DNA from: Anthoceros angustus
Lineage: Eukaryota; Plantae; Anthocerotophyta
NCBI GenBank assembly: GCA_010909165.1
Contig: VJWM01000173.1
Span: forward strand, 124,001 to 188,000
Direction: 5' to 3'
DNA length: 64,000 nt
Numbering within the stretch: the stretch's first letter is position 1; each line of letters begins with the position of its first letter. The notes beneath the pieces are model-generated. The model was not told where the DNA came from. It worked only from the letters and a program-made list of their open reading frames with translations, and made no database searches. This document shows positions 3,001-58,048 of this stretch, piece after piece. Made by a program: the position numbers and the translations under genes.

Positions 3001-6000
3001 CACAGCGTTAAAAGTCCCGGGACCTTGATCAATCTCCCGGGGTGCGCTCGGTGACTCGGGACTCACGTTAGCAAGAAGACTCACAAAGGTGCAAGGCGGC
3101 ATCAACACCAAGAGAAAGATGCTTTACTAGACCTCGGCCCTCTTATCTGCGGTGGCGTCTTTATTACACCCCTATTACGGTGATAGCCGGTATACCCTAA
3201 TCGGCCTACCATTATCCCCTATCTCCCCTTGTGTAGGTGGGAAGGTCACAGGCCCCTCGGAATGGGTGGTCCAATCCCCGTCAGCGTTGTGGTACCCAAT
3301 CGGATGATCCGTGAGGCCCTCCTCTCCCGGAATCACCGGGTTGGGCTCTGGCGGTCGACAAGCCTTACCACGGCGTCATCCTCCTGGCCTCCACAGGTCC
3401 CCGCGGTGGGGCCACCCTATCGGCTCCCCTAAGCGTAAGTCGAGGGGCTCCTCCTTCTTGTGCGGTCCTCGAGGTCTGTCTCGACTCCGAACTTGAGTCC
3501 TTATTCACAGGTCCGGTAGGCTGGGTCCAGGCCTTGTCTCAGGGTCCGGACCTCGGTCCGGACTTATTTCAGGACTTGGTCCGGACTTATTCAGGACTTG
3601 ATCCGGCCTCCCTGTCCGGACAAAGTCCGGACTCCACCGGGTTTCCTCCCTCACGGGACTCCTCCGTGGCTCTCCCTCGAAGTCCTCCTGTTCCCGATCG
3701 CCCGTGACTCCCGTTGGCCCCTCCTTCCATGGTGAGGTGCGGGGTGCTTACCTCGATCGCATCGCGCTCCTCGTTGCTCCTCGGTTGCTCCTCTCGCGCT
3801 CCGTCATCTCCAAGCAGGGGCCACTAGGGTCCCTGTCGTCCGTGGCCTTCATCTCCTTGAGCCTTCCAGGTCCGTTCTGCGTGAGTCGAGGCTTCTCGCC
3901 TTGAGCTCGGCGTGGTAATAGGCAAAGTCAGATCGACTTGTTGAATTGCCTCTTCCACGTGTGCGGGCGATACTCCCTCCGCCATAAGTGTTTGGCGTCT
4001 TTGCTTGTTGGGCCACCTCTCTGCCCGGTTGGTGGGCAGGCATATCACGAGGCTACAAGGCGGCCTCGGTCACCTCCTGCAGTGCCCATTTGCTCACGCT
4101 CCGGCTCCGTCGTTTCCTTTCCATTGCCGACTTACCGCCATAGCGGCGTTCCCTTCCGCCTTTCTCATTTGGACCCGGCTTCTTTTACCTTCCGGTGCTC
4201 GCGCTCCTCCGTTCATTCGGCCTTTAGCTCAGACTCCCTCTCCAGTGATACCTCCGTCCAGGCTCGGGACTTCCTCCGGCTCATAGCAGCAGCAGCGTCC
4301 AACTCCTTGGATAGTCGATTTTCCTCCGTCTTGAGGAGGCCGGGCACTCTGTTTCGTGCTCAGTCGTGGATTCTCTCGTTGAGAATCACTGCTTTCACGC
4401 ATCTTGGGTTGTAGCTCGGCGTGTCCTTCTTCCTCCATCTGCCGCCTCCCTTCTACCTCCTGCCTTGTGAGATCCTCTATCTCCCGAGTCTGGCCTTGCA
4501 CTGCTCCATAGCACTTTGTCACGGCCTTGAGTTAGCCTCGGTACTGTGACTCTCTCCACGGTTCGATCTGCGTCGTGATCCGGTCGCTCTTTGTGACTTG
4601 CTCCTTCGCCTTTACTCGCCCATTTGGCTCTGGGGCCGCCTCCGAGTCCAGCTCTCTGCTTGTGCCGGGCCTCTTCCGCCTCTGCTGCGCTTCCCTCTTC
4701 GCTGCAAGGTCCTCCGCGCTTGGGCCTCTGAGCTTGCTTGTGCCGGTGAAGAACCTTGATCTGCTGAACGCGCCTCGCGCTCACCCGGCGTTTCCCTTCC
4801 TCGATCCGGGGACTCCGCCTTTTTTGCCCCTGGGCCTTCACTTGCTCTTGGGTTCCACCATCCTCCTCCGGGTGGCCTCCACCTCAGGTCTTCTCATTGT
4901 CGAGACCCCAAAGCATTCCGTCCATAGTGGCAGACTCGCCGTGTTTCTTCCACGGTGTGAGGCCCCACAAAGTCCGTAGTGGAGCGGCATTTCTCGGTCC
5001 GCCAAGGACCTCCATACCGGATCGGGAGTAAGTCGGTGGGTTCTCGGACCTAATCGGGACCCTCGGGTCACAGTGGTGAGTCTCACCTCTTTGGCCCTCT
5101 TGGCCTCTAACTCCTTTGTGCCCTCTTTCTCACAGGGCTCGGAGGAGGTGAGGGGTCGGGAGCAAGCTCTTTTGCCCCTTCACAGGGGGCAGGCTCGGGT
5201 GGGGGGCTGCGATGACCTCCTGCTCCTTGGGCCACGTCCCTTTGCCCTCCCGCCTCTTGACCTCTTGCCACTCGTGGGGGTAAGTCGGCACCTTCGAGGT
5301 CTTTGCGTTGGTAAGCGGCACCGTCTTCGCCTCTTGGCTCCGTTGAGTTCGTCGGGGCTCGGCGTCGTGGTTGTTGGGCATTGTTACTCGGTCAGCCGCG
5401 CCCTCCGGCATCGCTCCCTCACTTGGCTCGGAGGGCACCAAAAGGAGGAAGGGGAATCGCCTCCCAAACTTCAGGTGGTGAGGGGTTCGCTCAGGTATGG
5501 AGTCAGGAATCCTCCCGGTCGTCCTCCTCCAGTCGCTTGGTCTTGAAGGGCGACCCCCACCTCAGGCGCCCTTGCACGCTCTACTTGGCGGGCCTCCCTT
5601 AGGGCGCCCGCTCAAGCTCTCCCTCCTTGAGCTCGAAATGTCCCCCATGAATCGGTATGGGGTCGCCGATGGCGAGGGCTTCTCGCTCCTTAGCGTGCCT
5701 CACGGTGAGCCGAAGATAATCCTTCCCGGTCGCTCTCTTCCCGGGGCGCATGCGAGAATACCAGGTTATCACCAAGGTGATCCACCTTGGCGAGTTCAAT
5801 GGACAATGATCCGGGCTACCGCCCTTACTCGATCCGGCGGATCGGATATCAACCATCCGTTGGTTGTCCTGCGTTCGAGCCTCGCGCCGTGGGCCCTATC
5901 TTCCCGCCGCCTTAAGGGGCTCGGCACCGCCCCTTCTTCCTCCTTGGGCGGTTGTAGGCCATCCTCGGGACCTCCAAGGTCCATCGCCTCGAGTCCTCCG

Positions 6001-13473: not shown

Positions 13474-14680
13474 AGTAAAATGCACTATAATCCAAAGCCT
13501 TAATAATAAAACCTACAACCAAAAGCCTTAAAAACTTGCTTGGAATCTTAAGCTAAAACCCATAGTTGAACCCTTTAGCAAAAACGCATCTAAATAACTC
13601 AAGTATACAAAGAACACCTAAAAAACGCATGTGCTCAAAGAACACCCAAAAACCTCACATGTTCAAAAAAGAACTCACTAAAACCGAGGACCTTAAAACT
13701 ATGAACCCTCTTAGAGTCTTTTGTATTGAAAATTCTTATATTCCTCGTGTGTTCCCTGCCTCTCGTCCATCATTTTCCTTTGACGCTGTTGGCCCGCTTG
13801 TCATTTCAAATTCAATTGAATGGCCTACATACAATCATGGAGATTGTGGAGGTTGCATCTCTAGCTATCAAAAGGCTATTTAATCTTTATATCGCAAATT
13901 CATACAAAACTATTCCCAGATTTTTTGGGCTATTCCGAAAGACATTGGGGTCTAAGTAAGAATACATCCGGATGTATAAGACTCTTAACAACAAGTTGAA
14001 TGAACTACTTGGGTATCTCAACAAGGGAGACTTGAGTTTAATTGCTTCTGCGTACCGTGACCCTTGTGATTCCCCTTGAGGCAGATGGGCTTGTCCATCT
14101 CTCGAATCGCAATAAAGTGCGAATCGATCCTTGGAGCTGCCGGTGTCCAAGTTCACACTTAAACCACATTGAATAGTAATATCTATCCATCGAAACTCGA
14201 AAGAGTTCGACACAAGGAGACTCCTCTGCCCTTTCTCCAGGGGAACTCTGACCGATCAACCAGGCACTGTTAGCAGATGGATGCAGCAAGATCTGAATTG
14301 AAATGTTTGAGGCTGAACATTGGGGTTGATCTACTGTCCTCCGCAACAAGGAGAAACATCAAACCATCAAAAACTGGCATAACCTGCAGAACAACAATTT
14401 GTGAGGACAGGTGGGCCGTCTTCATTTGCTCACCTGGTGAAGGTAATGCTCGAGGAGGAGCCACGTGTGACCACAGTGCATAAACAGCATGGAAGGAGAG
14501 GCAGAACAGGCAGCTGGCCGACTGTGGACCTGGTTTGCAGCAGGATGGAATCCTGATTCCTGTCTCGGTTCGCGTTTGCACTGGAGAGCTTGATCTTGGA
14601 GAAAGCTGATTGGAGTCTGACTGCTTCAATTCCAGCAGCAGAGGCGAGAGGGAGCGAGGAAGCAGCACTAGGGCGGGGGC

Positions 14681-15462
14681 ATGTCTGGAGCAAGCACCTC
14701 GAGGATCGATGAGGAGCAGCCGCTGGAGTACGCGGCCCTCAAGTCCGCGCCTGCCGCCCGTCCCCGCAAGGTGACTGCGGGGAGAGCGTGCCGCGCCTTC
14801 ACATCGGCTGTGTTGCTCCTGGTTATTGCGTTGCTTCTGGGAGGGATCGTGTTCCTGCTCTGGCCTACTTCCCCCGATGTGGAGGTGACTAGCATCAAAC
14901 TGGACGGCATCGACATCGAGAAGGATGACGAGAGCTCGTCCATCATCCCTTCTTTCTCCCTGAACGTGTCCCTCAAGCTCCTGCTTCAGATCACCAACAC
15001 GAACCTCTTCGGGCTCCGGTACGACACCATTCTGGTGCACATCTTGTACAGAGGGGATGAGGTCGGGCAGGTGGAGTCCGCCGGAGGCTCCGTGCCTGGG
15101 AAGAGTGTGAGCAATGTGACTGCCACGCTGGATCTCCAAGGGAAAGAAATTTTGGATAATGTTGGAGACCTCTGGGATGATGTCTCCAACAACTCTGTCC
15201 CCTTCCGAACCATCACAGAGTTCTGCGGCACTGTGGATCTCCTTTTCTTCCACCCTACCGTGCGGGTATTTCTCCTCTTTTGGCCCAGGCCTGTTTTCCC
15301 TTGCTCTTTTGCCTTGCTTGTCTGAAGTTGTTCAGACAACATTCTGTGTCCCGAGATGTTGACTGTTCCCAATGTTGGCTGCAGGTGAACTCAACTTGTG
15401 ACCTGGTTGTGGATCCTGACGAGAAGGTCATCCTCAGCCAGGAGTGTGACCTTGATTTCTGA
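14681..15462 (+). CDS. LEA_2 / NDR1-HIN1-like membrane protein (exons 14681-15265, 15385-15462)
   Basis: N-terminal TM helix ending FLLWPTSPDVEV, the ITNTNLFGLRYD motif and a C-terminal C-x-L-x-V-D-P...Q-x-C. The GT-AG intron preserves the frame. Confidence 0.88.
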
Positions 15463-15660
15463 GCATCTCCTGTAGCTTTCTTAGGACGGGGCTTTCTTAA
15501 CCTTAACATCATCATCATCACATGCTTAATGTATGACACATGGGTGGAATTTCCTAGCCTTCCTCCTTGTAGACGGGGCTCAACCAGCCCTTCACCATCT
15601 TTTCACCCTCTTGTATTCCCACTTTGTGAAATATTCAGGTTATGCACTACGTTGTATTGG

Positions 15661-15696
15661 ATGCCGATGCCGATGCCGATGCCGATGCCGATGCCC
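15661..15696. repeat. (ATGCCG)n microsatellite
   Basis: About 6 consecutive ATGCCG units. Confidence 0.95.
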
Positions 15697-16202
15697 TCAG
15701 TGATCAAACTTGTGATGTCGGTCCTTGTCACAAGAGGTTTCTAAAACCTAGTTGCTGCCTTTTGGTCCGCTTTCCCAGTCATCCGGTATAGGGCGCCCTT
15801 GCCTTGGATGGAAGTGGCAAGCTGGATTTCACGAAGGATCTTGGGTTGAGTTGAGCTCATTTGTGAGATTGAAGCAAGAGCAATTTGAGATTGAAGTAAG
15901 ATCATTTGTGAGATTGAATTCACGTATTGGTGAGCTTAACTCACTTCACTTAGGATGGTGTTCGACTCATCAGTGCAGTCCAACTCATTTGCGCTCAACT
16001 ACTTTTGGAAGGCTCATTTATGCAAGACGCTCCTTGGTTGGAAACACAAATGCGCTTCGGAAGCCCCTCGAATTGAGGTGCAACGTTTCCCGGTGAAACA
16101 GGACCATCCTCAGAGCCCGTGTGGGTTCTGATATGTCAGGAAGCCGCATTCCGGGACACTCTGCTTCGGCTGGAAACGAGGAAAGGGATTTTGCAAGATC
16201 AA

Positions 16203-18755
16203 ATGGCGATGCAGTTGGAGTTACGCCCGGTGGCCCAAGACAAACAGTCTGCCATCCATCCTATGCGCAATTTGTTGGCAGCAAAGTCGAGCTCGTCGTC
16301 AATGACATGTGGCTGTGTGGTACGGAACGGCCCACCATGGAAAGTGGCAGGCATATCGCAGGATTCAAGCCCAGCAGCCAAGAGCATGACGCACAAAGAG
16401 CGGCAGGAGCTCTTATGGCAGCAGTTCTTCTTGGATCCCTTGGATTGGTGGGACAACAGGGTCGATAAGCAAAGCCCCCGGCATCCCGACTTCAGGCACA
16501 AGACCTCCGAGGAGCCCCTGTGGCTCAACAGCCCTCGCAAGCCGGCTTGGGTGGATTCTGAGCTGGCCAGGTGGGATGTCGAGATGAGGGGGCTCCCGGC
16601 ATCAAGTGCAGGAAACGTTGATGATGAAAATTGGGTGAAGTCCCTGACCAAACGTTGCGAGGAGGCGGAGCTGGGTGAAGCTGTGGAAGCATTGAATCTT
16701 CTGGTGCAGCGGGGATATCATATCAGCCACAGTATCTTCCATCGAATCCTCAAGAGATGCATGGCAGAAAGGGATCTGGGTTGCGGTAGGCGAATTCATG
16801 CTCTTGTTCAAACAGGTGGGTATGGCTCTGACGCATTCGTGGCCAACCACATCATTGGCATGTACGCTTCTCATGGGGAGTTGGAGGATGCTGTGCAGGT
16901 CTTCAGGAATGTGATTGCACCCAGCGTACATATGTGGTCCTCTATCATTCTAGCGCTTGTCCGACATGGACAGCCAGCACAGGCTGTACAGCTCTATCAG
17001 CAGATGAGGGAAGCAAGCGTCAAGCCAGATAACCGTATATTTGTGGCAGCTCTCAAGGCGTGTGCCTCGGCAGGGGACCTAGTTTCTGGTAAGCAGGTGC
17101 ACGCTGATATTCCAGAGGGTGCCGTGCAGGAAGATGTTTTCGTGGCTACCAGCTTGGTGAATATGTATGCTAAATGCGGTAGCCTGGTGGAAGCTCGCAA
17201 AGTGTTTGACGGTCTACGGAGGAAAAATGTGGTGACATGGAATGCCATGCTCGCTGGGTATTCTCAGCAGGGCCTGGGCCGAGAAGCCTTGGCTCTGTAT
17301 GAAAGTATGCAGCATGAGGGCATGACTCCAGCTGATCATATCACGTTTGTGTGCCTTCTTCAAGCATGTGCCAGTGCGGGGGCGCTGCAGCTGGGTAAGC
17401 AGCTTCATTTGCAGATTCGTGCAAGAGGGCTCGAAGCTGATGTGCGAATGGGCAACTGCTTGGTGGACATGTATGCAAAATGCGGGAGCTTAGATGATGC
17501 TCGAATAGTATTTGACAGTTTGCCGACAAAAGATGTGGTGTCGTGGAATGCGATGATCGCAGGATATGTGCAGCAGGGTCTTGGTCACTATGCTCTGACT
17601 CTCTATGCCTCTATGCGCAAGGAGGGCATAACTGTTGCCAGTCTTGTGACATTCTCGTGCCTTTTACAAGCATGTGCCAGTGTGGGGGCGCTGCAGCAGG
17701 GTAAACAGCTCCATTCGGAGATACGGGAAAAGGGCCTCGAAGCTGATGTGTTTATCAGCAGCTGCCTTGTGGACATGTACTCCAAATGCGGCACTCTGGA
17801 AGATGCTCGCAAAGTTTTTGACAGTTTCCCAACGAGAGATGTAGTGACCTGGACAGCCCTGCTGAATGGGTATGCAGAGCATAGCGATGGCCACAAGGCA
17901 ATCCATTGTTTCGAAGAGATGCTCAAGCAAGGTATCAAGCCAAATGACACCACTTTCCTTTGTCTTTTGGTAGCCTGCAGTCACTCAGGCCTAGTACAAG
18001 AAGGCCAGGAGTATTTCAACAAGATGATCAAGGACCATGGGATTGCACCCACCGATTATCACTACAGCTGCATGGTTGATCTTCTTGCCCGGTCAGGCCA
18101 ACTGGACGAGGCTGAACACATGCTGCGGACGTCAGCGTTCGTGAATGATGTAGTGGGCTGGAAAGCTTTGCTGAGTGCCTGCAAAAACCACGGTGATGCA
18201 GAGCGCGGGAAGCGATGCTTTGACCATCTCGTACACTTGGACCCCCAAGATGCGAGCGCATACGTGCTGCTGGGGAACATGTATGCCAACGCCGGCAGGT
18301 GGGATGATGTGACTAGGCTAGAGAGCTTGAGAAAGTCAGTAGGTGCATGGAAGAAGGCTGCAAAGGCTTGCATTGAAGTTAGGAACGAGGTGCACGAGTT
18401 CACAGTAGGAGAAGACAGGTCTGACATCTCATCCAAGCTGAGGAGCGTGAACACAAGGCTGAAGGAGGAAGGGGGCCACGTGCCACGCACAGAGCTAGTG
18501 TTGAAGGCTGCCTCTGAGCAGGAGAAGGAGGATGCCTTATGTGGCCACGCAGAGAAGCTAGCCTTGGCTTACGGTCTGCTGAACACGCCAGATGGTGAAA
18601 CTTTGCTGGTCACCAAGAACCTTCGCATGTGCAATGACTGCCACAGTAGCACCAAGATCATGTCCCGGCTTGAAAGTCGCGAGATCATTGTGCGAGATGC
18701 ACATCGAGTGCACCGCTTCCTGGATGGGTCGTGTTCGTGTGGGGATAGGCATTGA
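16203..18755 (+). CDS. PLS-class PPR protein with E1/E2 and DYW:KP (DRH-type) domain; N-terminal OSB-type PDF motif; candidate organellar U-to-C RNA-editing factor
   Basis: Uninterrupted ORF, open from 16119 with the first ATG at 16203; an upstream exon is possible via an acceptor at ~16139. It has P-L-S triplets (MYAKCG...A...FD...VV.WNAMI), KKAAKACIEV in place of the PG box, HAEKLA, CNDCH and a terminal CSCGDRH. Confidence 0.95.
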   Translation: MAMQLELRPVAQDKQSAIHPMRNLLAAKSSSSSMTCGCVVRNGPPWKVAGISQDSSPAAKSMTHKERQELLWQQFFLDPLDWWDNRVDKQSPRHPDFRHKTSEEPLWLNSPRKPAWVDSELARWDVEMRGLPASSAGNVDDENWVKSLTKRCEEAELGEAVEALNLLVQRGYHISHSIFHRILKRCMAERDLGCGRRIHALVQTGGYGSDAFVANHIIGMYASHGELEDAVQVFRNVIAPSVHMWSSIILALVRHGQPAQAVQLYQQMREASVKPDNRIFVAALKACASAGDLVSGKQVHADIPEGAVQEDVFVATSLVNMYAKCGSLVEARKVFDGLRRKNVVTWNAMLAGYSQQGLGREALALYESMQHEGMTPADHITFVCLLQACASAGALQLGKQLHLQIRARGLEADVRMGNCLVDMYAKCGSLDDARIVFDSLPTKDVVSWNAMIAGYVQQGLGHYALTLYASMRKEGITVASLVTFSCLLQACASVGALQQGKQLHSEIREKGLEADVFISSCLVDMYSKCGTLEDARKVFDSFPTRDVVTWTALLNGYAEHSDGHKAIHCFEEMLKQGIKPNDTTFLCLLVACSHSGLVQEGQEYFNKMIKDHGIAPTDYHYSCMVDLLARSGQLDEAEHMLRTSAFVNDVVGWKALLSACKNHGDAERGKRCFDHLVHLDPQDASAYVLLGNMYANAGRWDDVTRLESLRKSVGAWKKAAKACIEVRNEVHEFTVGEDRSDISSKLRSVNTRLKEEGGHVPRTELVLKAASEQEKEDALCGHAEKLALAYGLLNTPDGETLLVTKNLRMCNDCHSSTKIMSRLESREIIVRDAHRVHRFLDGSCSCGDRH

Positions 18756-19657
18756 TCATTGATCATACGTAAACATACGTGTGTTACAACATGCTAATAA
18801 GCCTCTTTTTCCTGCTGGTACATTTTCTCATTGCCGACATGGGTACTGTCTGTTTCGATGGTGACGGAGTGGCGGAATCACCAAACAAGTGCGGACGGGC
18901 CTGGCCGGTCCTTGATTGGCATGCCGGAAACGACGATTGCCTATTCGATTGTAAAGAAAGAACAGAAAAAAGAAAATGTCCTTGTGCACAGTATGCTATT
19001 CTGAGAGTCGTAGGTCTCTATAATTGAGGAATAAGAGCTGGCAATGCGCTCAACAAATAGGTGATAACCGAGGCAGCTCTAACGCACATAAAGCTCGCTC
19101 TGGACGTTCAAGCAACTCGGCACATTCTACTGGAACGTCCTGTGGGGCCCATTTCCACCTGCTGCGTCGTTACAAGTTGGCTTTCTTCTTCGTTTCGGAT
19201 CCGCGGCTCTGCCCGGCCAGGACTGCGAGGTGTCGAGGGAATCGAGCGGGAAGGTGCGCGACCGTCCCGCGTGTTCCTCCTGCGTGTCACCTCCTGCTCC
19301 TTCCCGCGCCGGGTCGTGCGTCTACTTCTTGCTCTTTGCCCTGCGTTGATGTTGCCTTGTCTAACTGCTTGATTGCAGCTCCCAAAACCTGCTTCTACCT
19401 GCGCTCTTGGATTTCACGGCTCTTTGTCCAGCTGCTTCAGGTTTTCATAGTGTTGCGGATGTGTAGTTCTGCGTGAGGATGTGCTTTGTGGATGGGCGTG
19501 TTAGCTGGATTCGCGTGCCTCTGTTCCATGACGTTGATGCATGTCGACGCTCGAAGCGTTTTGGCCATGGTTGGCTGATGGCTACTTTGGACCTGGCAGT
19601 TTGAAGTGGATTTCTGACGTTTGTGTCCTCAAGGGAGTGTAGCAAGTGGTTTCCAAG

Positions 19658-33140: not shown

Positions 33141-34103
33141 ATGCGGGAGGGAGGAGTTTGCAGGCAGATGTCTGAGAGTGGTGTGAGGAAAGGCCGCAAC
33201 ATGGCAGACGTGAAGGCAGGTACAGGTTCTCTTTGGAGGACCCTAGTAGGAAAGGTTTCGTTCAGTTTGCGCCGCATGATGCTGCAGATTTTGTCAGCTG
33301 GCCCGATTCCCAGGCACGTAGCCATAATCATGGACGGGAACAGAAGGTTTGCGGACAGAGCTCAGATGGATAGGACAAGCGGGCATCTGTTCGGGTATGA
33401 CCGGTTGATCGAGACGCTGGAGAACTGCTTCGAGCTGGGAGTGAAGTACATGACAGTGTATGCCTTCAGCATAGACAATTTTAAGCGCTCGCCGGAGGAA
33501 GTGGCTGCTCTGATGGATCTTATGCAGGAGAAACTGGAGACGCTGGCGGAGAAAGAACGTTTGCTGGAGGATTATGGTGTGAAAGTGCAGGTTTGCGGCG
33601 ATTTATCTTTGTTACCTGAACGGGTTGTCACGGCAGCACAGCGGGCCATGGCTGCCACCAGACACAACGAATCGGCGGTGTTTAACATCTGTGTGGCTTA
33701 CACGTCTTCTCATGAGATGGTTGAGGCCATTCAGCAGATAAGGGATGGGGTTCTCGCCAAATCGATGGATGAGTTTGGCAGAAATGTGACCTTGAGCTCG
33801 CAGAAGGTTAGGGATATTAGCATGAGACCTGCCAAAAATCTGAAGGTGAGTGACATCTTGGAGGGGATCACGGAGAAAGACATTGATCAGCACTTGTACA
33901 CAAGGGGCTGTCCTGCTCCTGACTTGGTGATTCGAACATCCGGGGAGACTCGCTTGAGCAACTTCCTCATGTGGCAGAGCTGTTTTTCACATTTAGCTTT
34001 CTGTAGGGTGCTGTGGCCCCAATTTTCCCTACGGCACCTGTTTTGGATATTATTGGACTGGCAAATTGCTCACCCTGCACTCCAAGCTCAGCAATCCCCA
34101 TAG
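33141..34103 (+). CDS. cis-prenyltransferase (dehydrodolichyl diphosphate synthase-like), single coding exon
   Basis: IPRHVAIIMDGNRRFA, YAFSIDNFKRSPEEV and PDLVIRTSGETRLSNFLMWQ. The lack of a C-terminal RxG motif fits a heteromeric DHDDS-type subunit. Confidence 0.96.
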   Translation: MREGGVCRQMSESGVRKGRNMADVKAGTGSLWRTLVGKVSFSLRRMMLQILSAGPIPRHVAIIMDGNRRFADRAQMDRTSGHLFGYDRLIETLENCFELGVKYMTVYAFSIDNFKRSPEEVAALMDLMQEKLETLAEKERLLEDYGVKVQVCGDLSLLPERVVTAAQRAMAATRHNESAVFNICVAYTSSHEMVEAIQQIRDGVLAKSMDEFGRNVTLSSQKVRDISMRPAKNLKVSDILEGITEKDIDQHLYTRGCPAPDLVIRTSGETRLSNFLMWQSCFSHLAFCRVLWPQFSLRHLFWILLDWQIAHPALQAQQSP

Positions 34104-55426: not shown

Positions 55427-58048
55427 TCAATGTCTATCGCCACATGAACAAGAGCCGTCCACGAATCGATGAACACGATGTGCGTCTCTCACAATGATAT
55501 CTCGCTTTTCAAGGCTTGACATGATCTTCGTGCTGCTGTGACAGTCATTGCACATCCGGAGATTTTTGGTAACTAGCAAAGTTGCGCCCTCTGGCGTGTG
55601 CATAAGACCGTACGCCAATGCCAGTTTCTCTGCGTGCCCACACAAAGCATCTTCCTTTTCTTTCTCAGACACTGCCTTCAGCACCAACTGTGTTTGTGGT
55701 ACATGCCCTCCTTCTTTCTTCAACCTACTATTCAAGATCATCAGTCTTGGAGAGATGTCAGACCTCTCTTCACCTACTGTGAACTCATGCACCTCGTTCT
55801 TCACTTCAATGCATGCCTTTGCAGCCTTTTTCATTGCACCTGCCGACTTTCTCAAGCTTTCTATCCTTTCCACATCGTCCCACCTGCCTGCGTTGGCATA
55901 GATAGTCCCCAACAGCACATATGCACTGGCATCCTCAGGTGCTAATTTGACAAGATGGTCAAAGCACCGTCGTCCACGCTCTACATCACCATACCCTTTG
56001 CACGCCGTCAGCAACGCTGTCCAGCCCACAACATCGTTCACGAACGATGCACTCCGCAACAGATGTTCGGCCTCATCCAGCTGGCCAGAACGGCCAAGAA
56101 GATCAACCATGCAACTGAGGGGATAATCAGAGGGCACAATCCCATGCTCTTCCACCATCATTCTGAAATACCTCTGGCCCTCTTGCACCAGGCCAGCATG
56201 ACTGCAAGCCACAAGGAGACATGTAAAAGTAGTCTCATCTGGCTGAACACCTTGCTGCAGCATGTCTTCAAAACACCGAATGGCCATGTGACCATCGTTA
56301 TTTTGGGCATAGCCATTCAGGAGAGCATTCCATGTCACCAAATTTCGTCTGGGCAGACTGTCAAAGAGTTTGCCGGCATCCTCCAAGTCACCACATTTTG
56401 AATACATGTCCACCAGGCAGCTGCTAATGAATGCATCGCCCTCTAAGCCCCTTTCCCGAATCTCAGAGTGAAGCTGCTTCCCCTGCTGCAATGCTCCAAC
56501 ACTGGCGCATGCCTGAAGAAGGCATAAAAACGTGACATGATTGGCTGGAGTGATGCCCTCATGTTGCATGTTTCCATACAGATTCAGGGCTTCGCGCCCG
56601 AGGCCCTGCTGAGCATATCCTGCAATCATGGCATTCCAGGTCACCACATCTTTTCTGGGCAGAGTGTCAAACACCTCACGAGCATCCGCCAAGCTCCCAC
56701 ACTTAGCATACATGTTTACCAGGCTGCTAACAATGACTGCATCAGCTTCAAAGCCTCTTTCTCGGATGAGTAAGTGGAGCTCCTTGCCCTGCTCTAGGTC
56801 TCCTACACTCGCACATGCCTGCAGGAGGGAGACAAACGTAACTCTATTGTCTGGAGTGACACCTTCTTCCTGCATAGCCCTGTAAAGCTGGAGGGCTTCC
56901 TGCCCCATGCCCTGCTGGGAATATCCTGCTATCATGGCATTCCACATCACCACATCTTTCTGAGGAAGGCCATCAAACATGGTTTGAGCATCATCCAAGC
57001 TGCCACATTTTGCATACATGTTTACCAAACTAGTGGCTACAAACATGTCAGATCGAAGTCCCCTGTCTCTAATTTGTGCATGAAGCTGTTTCCCGGTCTC
57101 CAAGGCCGGGGTGCCCACACTTGTACATGCCTGGAGAAGGTACACAAACGTCACGGAATCTGGTGCCACCATACCCTCTTCTTGCATAGCCCTATAAAGC
57201 CCAAGGGCCTTTTGCCACATGCCCTGCTGGGAATATGCAGCTATCAGAGACGTCCACGTCACAACATTCTTCTGGCCAAGTCCATCAAACACTCTATGAG
57301 CGTCTTCCAAGCTGCCACACTTTGCATACATGTCCACCAAGCAATTACAAACAAACATGTCAGGCTCAACCCCACTGGCCAGCACATGAGCATGCACCTG
57401 CTGCCCAGTTTCCAAGTCTGCTCCCCTTGCACAAGCCTGGAGGGCTGCTACAAACACATGGCCATCCGGTTTCACACCCGACCTGCACATTTCATGGTAC
57501 AGCTGTATGGCCTGCCTGTCTTGTCCGTGTTTAACTTGAGCAGAAATTATGGCAGACCATGTGAAGGCATCTGGCTCGGCAACCACTGCAAAGACATCCA
57601 TGGCTTCCTGCAACCTGGCATGAGTAGCATACATCCGCAATAAATGGTTGCACAAGAACGTATCCGACTCATATCCCCCTTTCACGGTGAGGGCATGGAC
57701 ACGGCGACCCAGAACGAGGTCTCTCTGAACCACACAATTTTTTAGCACAGTATAAAACAGAGACTGAGAAACACAAGAGTATGTCTGCACCATAACTCCC
57801 AGCGCCTCAACACCGTCAGTGAGCTGCCCCTGCTGACATAATTGGCTCACAGTTTCAGCCGTTACGCCCCTTTGGTATCCTGCAGGCATGTCAAGATCAG
57901 CCTGCTGGGCACCCACCCAAGGTGGCCTGTAGAACCCGAGGGCCTCCTGGGACTCCCTACGGAGATTATCCCACCAAATTGTCCTTGCGGGATCCAAAGA
58001 CGCTGCTGTGGCCCTGTGTGAATGACGTGCAACGCGCCACGCAGCCAT
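55427..58048 (-). CDS. PLS-class PPR protein with E1/E2 and DYW:KP (DRH-type) domain; paralogue of 16203-18755
   Basis: 873-aa uninterrupted ORF with KKAAKACIEV, HAEKLA, CNDCH and CSCGDRH. The Arg/Ala/Ser-rich N-terminus resembles an organellar presequence. Confidence 0.95.
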   Translation of the reverse strand: MAAWRVARHSHRATAASLDPARTIWWDNLRRESQEALGFYRPPWVGAQQADLDMPAGYQRGVTAETVSQLCQQGQLTDGVEALGVMVQTYSCVSQSLFYTVLKNCVVQRDLVLGRRVHALTVKGGYESDTFLCNHLLRMYATHARLQEAMDVFAVVAEPDAFTWSAIISAQVKHGQDRQAIQLYHEMCRSGVKPDGHVFVAALQACARGADLETGQQVHAHVLASGVEPDMFVCNCLVDMYAKCGSLEDAHRVFDGLGQKNVVTWTSLIAAYSQQGMWQKALGLYRAMQEEGMVAPDSVTFVYLLQACTSVGTPALETGKQLHAQIRDRGLRSDMFVATSLVNMYAKCGSLDDAQTMFDGLPQKDVVMWNAMIAGYSQQGMGQEALQLYRAMQEEGVTPDNRVTFVSLLQACASVGDLEQGKELHLLIRERGFEADAVIVSSLVNMYAKCGSLADAREVFDTLPRKDVVTWNAMIAGYAQQGLGREALNLYGNMQHEGITPANHVTFLCLLQACASVGALQQGKQLHSEIRERGLEGDAFISSCLVDMYSKCGDLEDAGKLFDSLPRRNLVTWNALLNGYAQNNDGHMAIRCFEDMLQQGVQPDETTFTCLLVACSHAGLVQEGQRYFRMMVEEHGIVPSDYPLSCMVDLLGRSGQLDEAEHLLRSASFVNDVVGWTALLTACKGYGDVERGRRCFDHLVKLAPEDASAYVLLGTIYANAGRWDDVERIESLRKSAGAMKKAAKACIEVKNEVHEFTVGEERSDISPRLMILNSRLKKEGGHVPQTQLVLKAVSEKEKEDALCGHAEKLALAYGLMHTPEGATLLVTKNLRMCNDCHSSTKIMSSLEKRDIIVRDAHRVHRFVDGSCSCGDRH

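Follow-up and report, generated by a model that had tools for sequence, protein, structure and literature searches.

When an array of pentatricopeptide repeats (PPR) binds RNA, its N-terminal motifs point toward the 5′ end, and a DYW domain following the array acts immediately 3′ of the site that is bound. In early-diverging plants, PPR-DYW proteins are believed to do their editing unaided, whereas those of seed plants have helper proteins, and it is from these proteins that programmable C-to-U and U-to-C RNA editors are derived. Here, we describe a gene for such a protein in the hornwort Anthoceros angustus, located in a 64,000-nucleotide stretch of GenBank assembly GCA_010909165.1 (contig VJWM01000173.1, positions 124,001 to 188,000, forward strand). 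This whole stretch is called the window below, and its own numbering is used for all coordinates. [quoted passage not shown] The architecture is solid and widespread, and the role of the accessory domain, which is argued by analogy, may be the binding of single strands.

The closest described editing factors are the hornwort proteins with a DYW domain of the KP type (DYW:KP). Both U-to-C editing and DYW:KP domains have been reported only from hornworts, lycophytes, and ferns, and mosses and liverworts are without U-to-C editing (PMC4915041, PMC9478123). The "DRH" subgroup is one of the two hornwort DYW:KP variants (PMC9478123). As summarized there, its members (Gerke 2020 and Gutmann 2020, as cited in PMC9478123; designer KP1) share with the window protein the PLS-class array, the E1/E2 motifs, and a 133-aa DYW domain with HAE, K88, M92, CxxC, and DRH. 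In these descriptions the region before the PPR array is a targeting sequence only and no PDF is named, whereas the window protein has its PDF domain at this position.

The other closest system is the OSB family itself, whose members carry one to five PDF copies at the C-terminal side, after an OB-fold-like domain. Reviews citing Zaegel 2006 report that the PDF motif of Arabidopsis OSB1 is sufficient for binding single-stranded DNA (ssDNA), with ssDNA preferred over double-stranded DNA and RNA, and ssDNA binding by a PDF motif is known from these reviews only for Arabidopsis OSB1 and OSB2 (PMC6963530, PMC4166229, PMC6451138). The window protein is like the OSB proteins in its signature of about 50 aa, in significant sequence similarity, and in predicted fold (template-modelling [TM] score of 0.90 to an SSB-family cluster). 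In contrast to them, it has a single N-terminal copy before a PPR array and no OB fold, and its PDF domain is acidic where the median isoelectric point (pI) of the family is basic. The possibility that the whole protein is an OSB protein was ruled out, since it lacks an OB fold: there was no match to PF00436 at E ≤ 1, and only a 64-residue low-complexity presequence precedes the PDF domain.

PPR proteins with accessory domains, such as PPR-SMR, PPR-RRM (e.g., PPR4), PPR-LAGLIDADG (e.g., OTP51), PRORP with NYN, PPR-CBS, and PPR-SAP, follow the same design, in which the array provides the specificity and the appended domain an extra activity. The window protein differs from them in that its PDF domain is N-terminal and is combined with a C-terminal deaminase-fold domain, which makes three modules. 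PDF is also absent from the additional domains of moss PPR proteins listed in a review, which are RRM, LAGLIDADG, SMR, NYN, CBS, and SAP only (PMC9459714). The seed-plant editosome helpers MORF/RIP, ORRM, and OZ may be functional analogues that add nucleic-acid or protein contacts to a PPR editor, but these are separate polypeptides with unrelated folds, whereas the PDF domain is fused in cis. A 2026 study of OSB evolution required both the OB-fold and PDF domains and did not mention PPR (PMC13393729), and a 2026 survey of editing-factor domain fusions mentioned neither OSB nor PDF (PMC13386178). An initial reading of the window (below, the sequence-only reading) had been aware of no characterization of the architecture. 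In agreement with this, no description of a PDF motif combined with PPR or DYW proteins was found in the literature searched, a search whose reach did not extend to Zaegel 2006 or to the DYW:KP-defining papers, Gerke 2020 and Gutmann 2020. The PDF-PPR pairing is apparently undescribed.

The 50 residues that had been read as a PDF motif are the exact translation of 16416-16565 (+), and they lie, as had been claimed, within one uninterrupted open reading frame (ORF). There is no stop in this frame from 16077 to 18752, and a TGA follows at 18753-18755. The mechanical ORF covers 16119-18755 (878 aa), and the ORF from the best ATG covers 16203-18755 (850 aa). The latter is an intronless, transcribed nuclear gene encoding a presequence, one PDF domain, a linker, about 15 PLS-class PPR motifs, E1/E2 motifs, and a DYW:KP domain. 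The features of the gene, together with an overlapping upstream ORF and a paralogue in the same window, were as follows:

15991-16202 (+): transcribed leader, 5′ of the best start codon; covered by the RNA contig 15991-16502 of run X1 with 0 mismatches, the contig ends not marking the transcription start
16133-16468 (+): out-of-frame upstream ORF of 111 codons, from the list of ATGs, which spans the main ORF's start and terminates within the PDF coding region (stop at 16466-16468)
16203-16394 (+): start codon at 16203, the first in-frame ATG (context GATCAAATGG), and the 64-aa presequence, a putative organellar targeting peptide
16395-16577 (+): PDF domain, 61 aa as modelled, from a hidden Markov model (HMM), phmmer, and AlphaFold; the core recognized in the sequence-only reading is 16416-16565
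16596-16622 (+): short flexible linker of about 10 aa from the PDF domain to the first PPR helix, with a low predicted local distance difference test score (pLDDT) between two confident modules
16623-18188 (+): PLS-class PPR array of about 15 motifs (five P-L-S triplets), from Pfam PPR, PPR_1, PPR_2, and PPR_3 and from self-similarity
18189-18353 (+): E1/E2 motifs, from Pfam E_motif PF20431
18354-18752 (+): DYW:KP domain of the DRH subtype, 133 aa, from Pfam DYW_deaminase and diagnostic residues
55427-58048 (−): paralogous PPR-E-DYW:KP (DRH) gene of 873 aa with a PDF remnant only, 65% identical over 714 aa

The Pfam matches to the window ORF included PPR (E = 6.8e-66) and PPR_2 (E = 1.5e-67), as well as PPR_1 and PPR_3, followed by E_motif (PF20431) at residues 691-746 of the 878-aa ORF (E = 3.3e-13) and DYW_deaminase (E = 1.3e-34). 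The self-similarity of the PPR region was maximal at an offset of 102 aa, which is one P-L-S triplet, and the 522 aa of the region divided by 102 give 5.1 triplets. Across the first 170 residues of the ORF there was no Pfam match; Pfam is without any model for the PDF motif. The 64-aa presequence contains 7 basic and 3 acidic residues, 12 serines and threonines, and 8 alanines, and it probably directs the protein to an organelle.

The C-terminal 133 aa contain HAE at 65-67, K88, M92, CNDC at 93-96, and a terminal DRH at 131-133. This agrees with the numbering and diagnostic residues given for DYW:KP domains (132-133 aa, HAE for HSE, Lys88, and Met92; PMC9478123, PMC11845758), and the earlier assignment to the DYW:KP type was upheld by these residues, the CxxC, and the length. 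The window domain opens with K-A-A-K-A and has no PG, and the box that gives the KP type its name reads Lys-Ala here and not Lys-Pro. The PDF domain is in frame with the PLS-class array and this DYW:KP-type domain, within an unspliced transcript, which confirmed the three-module architecture that the sequence-only reading had put forward.

The homology of the N-terminal domain was assessed with the 61 aa encoded by 16395-16577, which were compared using phmmer with 1.84 billion cluster representatives. There were 658 matches at E ≤ 1e-3, 175 at E ≤ 1e-10, and 14 at E ≤ 1e-30. The matches bearing source names included OSB1 (Populus, 8.8e-19), organellar single-stranded DNA binding protein 3 (Euphorbia, 2e-19), and OSB3 (Chenopodium, 4e-44), and proteins with the Pfam domain SSB (PF00436) followed by PDF repeats were also found. 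An HMM was trained on 298 PDF instances taken solely from matches without PPR repeats. This non-PPR HMM matched the window ORF with E = 1.6e-21 (71.6 bits, model positions 2-60 of 61), and none of the other six-frame segments of the 64-kb window gave a match better than E = 0.075. As the training sequences had been collected through their similarity to the window, it is the phmmer search that provides the independent statistic. An alignment of 141 motifs had two invariant columns (F33 and W52) and eleven nearly invariant ones, all 13 of which are kept in the window copy, and the signature columns of the PDF motif of about 50 aa (Trp, Pro-Asp-Phe, and Trp-Val) are present as well. Word-index protein searches with the window N-terminus returned no relatives, which reflects a limit of the index, as the exhaustive HMMER search yields hundreds. 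By sequence comparison, the window PDF domain is a true homologue of the plant organellar OSB ssDNA-binding repeat, as had been claimed on the basis of the motif pattern. We hold the architecture and homology of this PDF-PPR-DYW:KP protein to be correct with high confidence.

Three gene models with unusual PDF arrangements were also encountered. The Kingdonia uniflora protein model P0001 (1160 aa) contains 13 PDF repeats, many more than the 1-5 described for OSB proteins, and close to its C-terminal end it matches SSB weakly. The Coptis chinensis P0052 and Striga hermonthica P0040 gene models have PDF repeats with a kinesin motor domain, or, in a model named "Interactor of constitutive active ROPs 2," with an SSB domain. 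Both are probably fused gene models and not real architectures.

A structure of the PDF domain was predicted from the 141-motif alignment using AlphaFold2, with a pLDDT of 93.2 and a predicted TM score (pTM) of 0.77. In the model, a helix is followed by two short strands and then by a C-terminal helix, and as modelled, the PDF domain is an autonomous small fold. There was no match to it among solved structures (best E = 4.9 with Foldseek against the PDB; best Z of 2.9 with VIA-align against 48,161 chains), and a Foldseek search of BFVD returned nothing. In the ESM Atlas, where the comparison is between one prediction and another, the model matched a PPR cluster (127 members, Streptophyta; TM 0.96, root-mean-square deviation [rmsd] of 0.6 Å over 61 residues), two Streptophyta clusters named "DYW domain-containing" (TM 0.92 and 0.89), and an SSB-family Streptophyta cluster (PF00436 in 98%; TM 0.90, rmsd 1.2 Å over 60 residues). 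Therefore, the same module is predicted in OSB-type and PPR-type proteins. A second model of 209 aa, comprising the PDF domain, the linker, and the first four PPR motifs, was built using 38 PDF-PPR sequences. Both of its parts were confident, the pLDDT of residues 68-76 was below 50, and the PPR helices started at residue 77. This predicted arrangement indicates a rigid PDF module on a short flexible tether to the PPR array.

The Atlas fold search also returned two clusters of Uroviricota hypothetical proteins (TM 0.73 and 0.68 over 58-60 residues), unconfirmed matches that may reflect a distant phage relative of the PDF fold or may be due to chance. Similarly, an Atlas feature search gave a weak Phage_gp49 match (PF25690, 0.82), with nothing from BFVD or Pfam, and this unconfirmed lead was not used.

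To follow the gene at the RNA level, four public runs were aligned to 13500-19400 of the window, and run X1, which comes from the same organism, was identical to it in sequence. All four runs skip a 119-nt GT..AG intron (15265-15383) in the upstream LEA_2 gene, and because this intron of the neighbour is spliced out, the four runs are RNA assemblies. The depth was zero in the intergenic regions 13500-14484 and 18819-19212, and genomic DNA contamination was ruled out by these gaps together with the spliced neighbour intron. The X1 contigs, each with 0 mismatches, covered 15666-15991, 15991-16502, 16473-16869, 16847-17375, 17465-18086, and 18169-18644. Since they run across 15991-16869 without any joint, the PDF motif is part of an unspliced transcript. 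The sequence-only reading had asked for confirmation from RNA that the motif lies in the mature coding sequence, and the motif was covered by mismatch-free contigs with no splice across that interval. In run X6, from a related organism, a contig over 16013-16579 had 48 differences.

The earliest in-frame ATG is that at 16203, which has a strong context (A at −3, G at +4), and four further in-frame ATGs precede the motif. Short upstream ATGs are located at 16020 and 16050, and the ATG at 16133, which opens the upstream ORF, has the context TCTGATATGT, which is weaker than that of the main ATG. The next in-frame ATG past the end of the upstream ORF is at 16584, just beyond the motif. As an observation in its own right, the upstream ORF at 16133-16468 may regulate the translation of the PPR gene.

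The codons of the motif were then compared with those of two relatives. Against a related gene on a contig of another sample (L001), the 50 motif codons had a proportion of non-synonymous differences (pN) of 0.175 and of synonymous differences (pS) of 0.84, and against the PDF-PPR protein P0003 (L002) the values were 0.163 and approximately 1.0. In the codons flanking the motif, including the presequence, pN was 0.44-0.50. Judged from these substitutions, the PDF motif is conserved as protein while its silent sites are randomized, which is the pattern of purifying selection. This pattern argues against a start downstream of the motif. The PDF domain is probably kept on the mature protein.

The paralogue at 55427-58048 presents another state of the domain. 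In the BLASTP alignment, its N-terminus keeps the flanks of the motif and the middle is deleted, and the PDF HMM gave no match to the paralogue even at E ≤ 10. Its eroded motif and open frame show that the PDF domain can be lost while the frame stays open. As a separate observation, the L001 gene (2977-5506 of a Logan contig from SRR33208241) has a PDF 69% identical to that of the window. Its PDF ORF ends at 3489, and from 3479 onward the PPR-E-DYW ORF is read in a different frame; the deaminase box is HVE and the C-terminus is degenerate. This copy, from another sample, is frameshifted or decaying.

The sequence-only reading had linked the PDF fusion to U-to-C editing. Among the best 150 representatives matching the window PDF, 17 had PPR repeats, with the PDF at the N-terminal side; the named carriers were the lycophyte Diphasiastrum complanatum, the ferns Adiantum capillus-veneris and Ceratopteris richardii, and the moss Sphagnum compactum. 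A search with the PDF of the Sphagnum protein yielded 49 further proteins from seven Sphagnum species, the leafy liverwort Calypogeia fissa, and Diphasiastrum. All 49 had PPR Pfam domains, all were matched by the non-PPR PDF HMM (E of 1e-23 to 1e-27), and in these annotated relatives the PDF lay within residues 10-167, before the PPR array. HSE was present in 21 of the 49 and a terminal Asp-Tyr-Trp in 19, which corresponds to the canonical C-to-U-type DYW:PG domain. Because these Sphagnum, Calypogeia, and Diphasiastrum proteins carry the same N-terminal PDF, it is not a feature of U-to-C editors; the KP-specific reading of the fusion was ruled out, and the proposed link to U-to-C editing was abandoned. 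As far as sequence matches and annotated domains tell, the PDF accompanies PLS-class PPR proteins of the E, DYW:PG, and DYW:KP types in mosses, a liverwort, a hornwort, lycophytes, and ferns, and the pairing is old. No PDF-PPR protein of a seed plant was seen among the named matches, which form an incomplete census. In a tree of the 141 motifs, the PPR-borne PDFs formed two groups apart from the angiosperm OSB PDFs, and none of 500 label shuffles was as clustered. This tree was built by a quick method from 61 columns, and most of its forks were poorly supported, so that the number of fusion events cannot be given.

For the function of the protein, we propose the following course. The protein would be imported into an organelle with the PDF domain retained on the mature protein. 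The PPR array would read a target of about 15-17 nt, with its N-terminus toward the 5′ side of the RNA, and the DYW:KP domain would act on a pyrimidine just 3′ of the PPR site. The tethered PDF domain would be a sequence-unspecific accessory binder of single-stranded nucleic acid, positioned 5′ of the PPR footprint. By holding the RNA there, it could raise the affinity or keep the RNA unfolded; alternatively, it could hold exposed ssDNA of the nucleoid, and the editor would be kept at the site of transcription. The tethering to nucleoids or R-loops and the action on ssDNA that the sequence-only reading had suggested are purely conjectural. By analogy with the OSB proteins, single-strand binding as the role of the domain here has a chance that we place slightly short of even. 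The best explanation as a whole, with architecture, homology, and role taken together, may be right or wrong with about equal probability.

Several points weigh against this proposal, and each has to be set beside the rival explanations that it feeds. The window PDF is mildly acidic, with a pI of 5.6 and a net charge of −2 compared with a family median pI of 8.07, and strong non-specific nucleic-acid binding is therefore not favoured. The acidity would suit a protein-protein docking module, which would not bind nucleic acid and would recruit the editor to OSB proteins, other nucleoid proteins, or partner editing factors, or would serve self-association. The strongly conserved aromatic residues could equally form a protein interface, and there would be room for another assembly factor if non-seed plants are, as they are to our knowledge, without the MORF helper proteins of seed plants. 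We consider docking rather unlikely, as the only experimental statement on the PDF, made for OSB1 and OSB2 in reviews, is that of ssDNA binding (PMC6963530, PMC6451138). Regarding single-strand binding, the OSB proteins are reported to prefer ssDNA over RNA, so that RNA binding is not the obvious activity (PMC4166229), and nucleic-acid binding, localization, and editing are all ascribed to the PDF-PPR proteins by analogy. The catalytic direction of the DRH-type domain is likewise read from its residues, as the designer proteins KP2, KP3, and KP6 showed U-to-C activity in E. coli and the DRH-based KP1 was not among them (PMC9478123). The same ssDNA preference (PMC4166229) would fit the idea that the PDF brings the DYW domain to ssDNA for the editing of DNA and not of RNA. 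This is barely credible, since in this family it is the PPR array, a reader of RNA, that selects the target, since the same PDF is found on ordinary C-to-U RNA editors of mosses and liverworts, and since no evidence of organellar DNA editing was found in the literature searched.

Two further points concern the question of whether the PDF domain works in the protein at all. The paralogue about 40 kb away keeps its PPR-DYW:KP frame with an eroded motif, and the PDF may be dispensable for some editors. The domain could accordingly be an inherited passenger with little or no present function here, useful in an ancestor, decaying in the hornwort KP family, and tolerated because editing is undisturbed; the paralogue has lost the middle of the motif and keeps an open frame of 873 aa. 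The window copy, however, retains every one of the 13 conserved columns, its motif shows roughly one third of the non-synonymous change of the flanks with synonymous sites saturated, and the fold is predicted with high confidence, which makes a passenger distinctly improbable. The other point is the out-of-frame ATG at 16133, which opens a 111-codon ORF into the PDF coding region, and the RNA contigs cannot give the transcription start. The motif would be outside the working protein if translation reinitiated at the ATG at 16584 after the upstream ORF, whose end at 16466-16468 leaves this as the next in-frame ATG, or if the motif were removed with the transit peptide. Against this, protein-level conservation with saturated synonymous sites requires translation, the ATG at 16203 has the better context, the PDF stands ahead of the PPR array, 10-110 residues from the N-terminus, in the 49 annotated relatives, and a folded 60-aa domain would be atypical of a cleavable presequence. 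Exclusion of the motif from the protein is thus highly unlikely.

In a more far-reaching reading, the PDF would be a helper that land-plant RNA editors have carried within themselves since their ancestors. Its fusion to PLS-PPR proteins would predate the split of bryophytes and vascular plants; mosses, liverworts, hornworts, lycophytes, and ferns would have retained it, and in seed plants separate helpers such as MORF would have taken its place. The domain would couple editing to fresh single strands (nascent RNA or displaced DNA) at the nucleoid, which would make editing co-transcriptional. We regard this scenario as speculative and improbable. More generally, a conserved and folded N-terminal PDF is a candidate for the missing accessory function of early-plant editors, and we know of no synthetic-editor design so far that includes this module. 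The finding also widens the range of the PDF beyond DNA maintenance, and the domain offers a compact construct of 60 aa for the first structure of the PDF fold. Since the window copy is intact and transcribed, it is a practical starting clone.

Several neighbouring features were recorded in the window. The upstream neighbour at 14528-15689 (+) is a gene with a LEA_2 domain, matched by Pfam in exon 1 (3.1e-09), and a (GATGCC)n microsatellite is located at about 15663-15695, in the 3′ region of this gene. On the other side of the PPR gene, the coverage resumes at 19213-19400, where run X1 skips 125 nt with GT..AG ends at 19252-19376 (+), which indicates an expressed, spliced gene just downstream in this region. 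Farther along, 33141-34103 (+) contains a 320-aa ORF with a cis-prenyltransferase (undecaprenyl/dehydrodolichyl diphosphate synthase) domain (PF01255, 5.9e-71).

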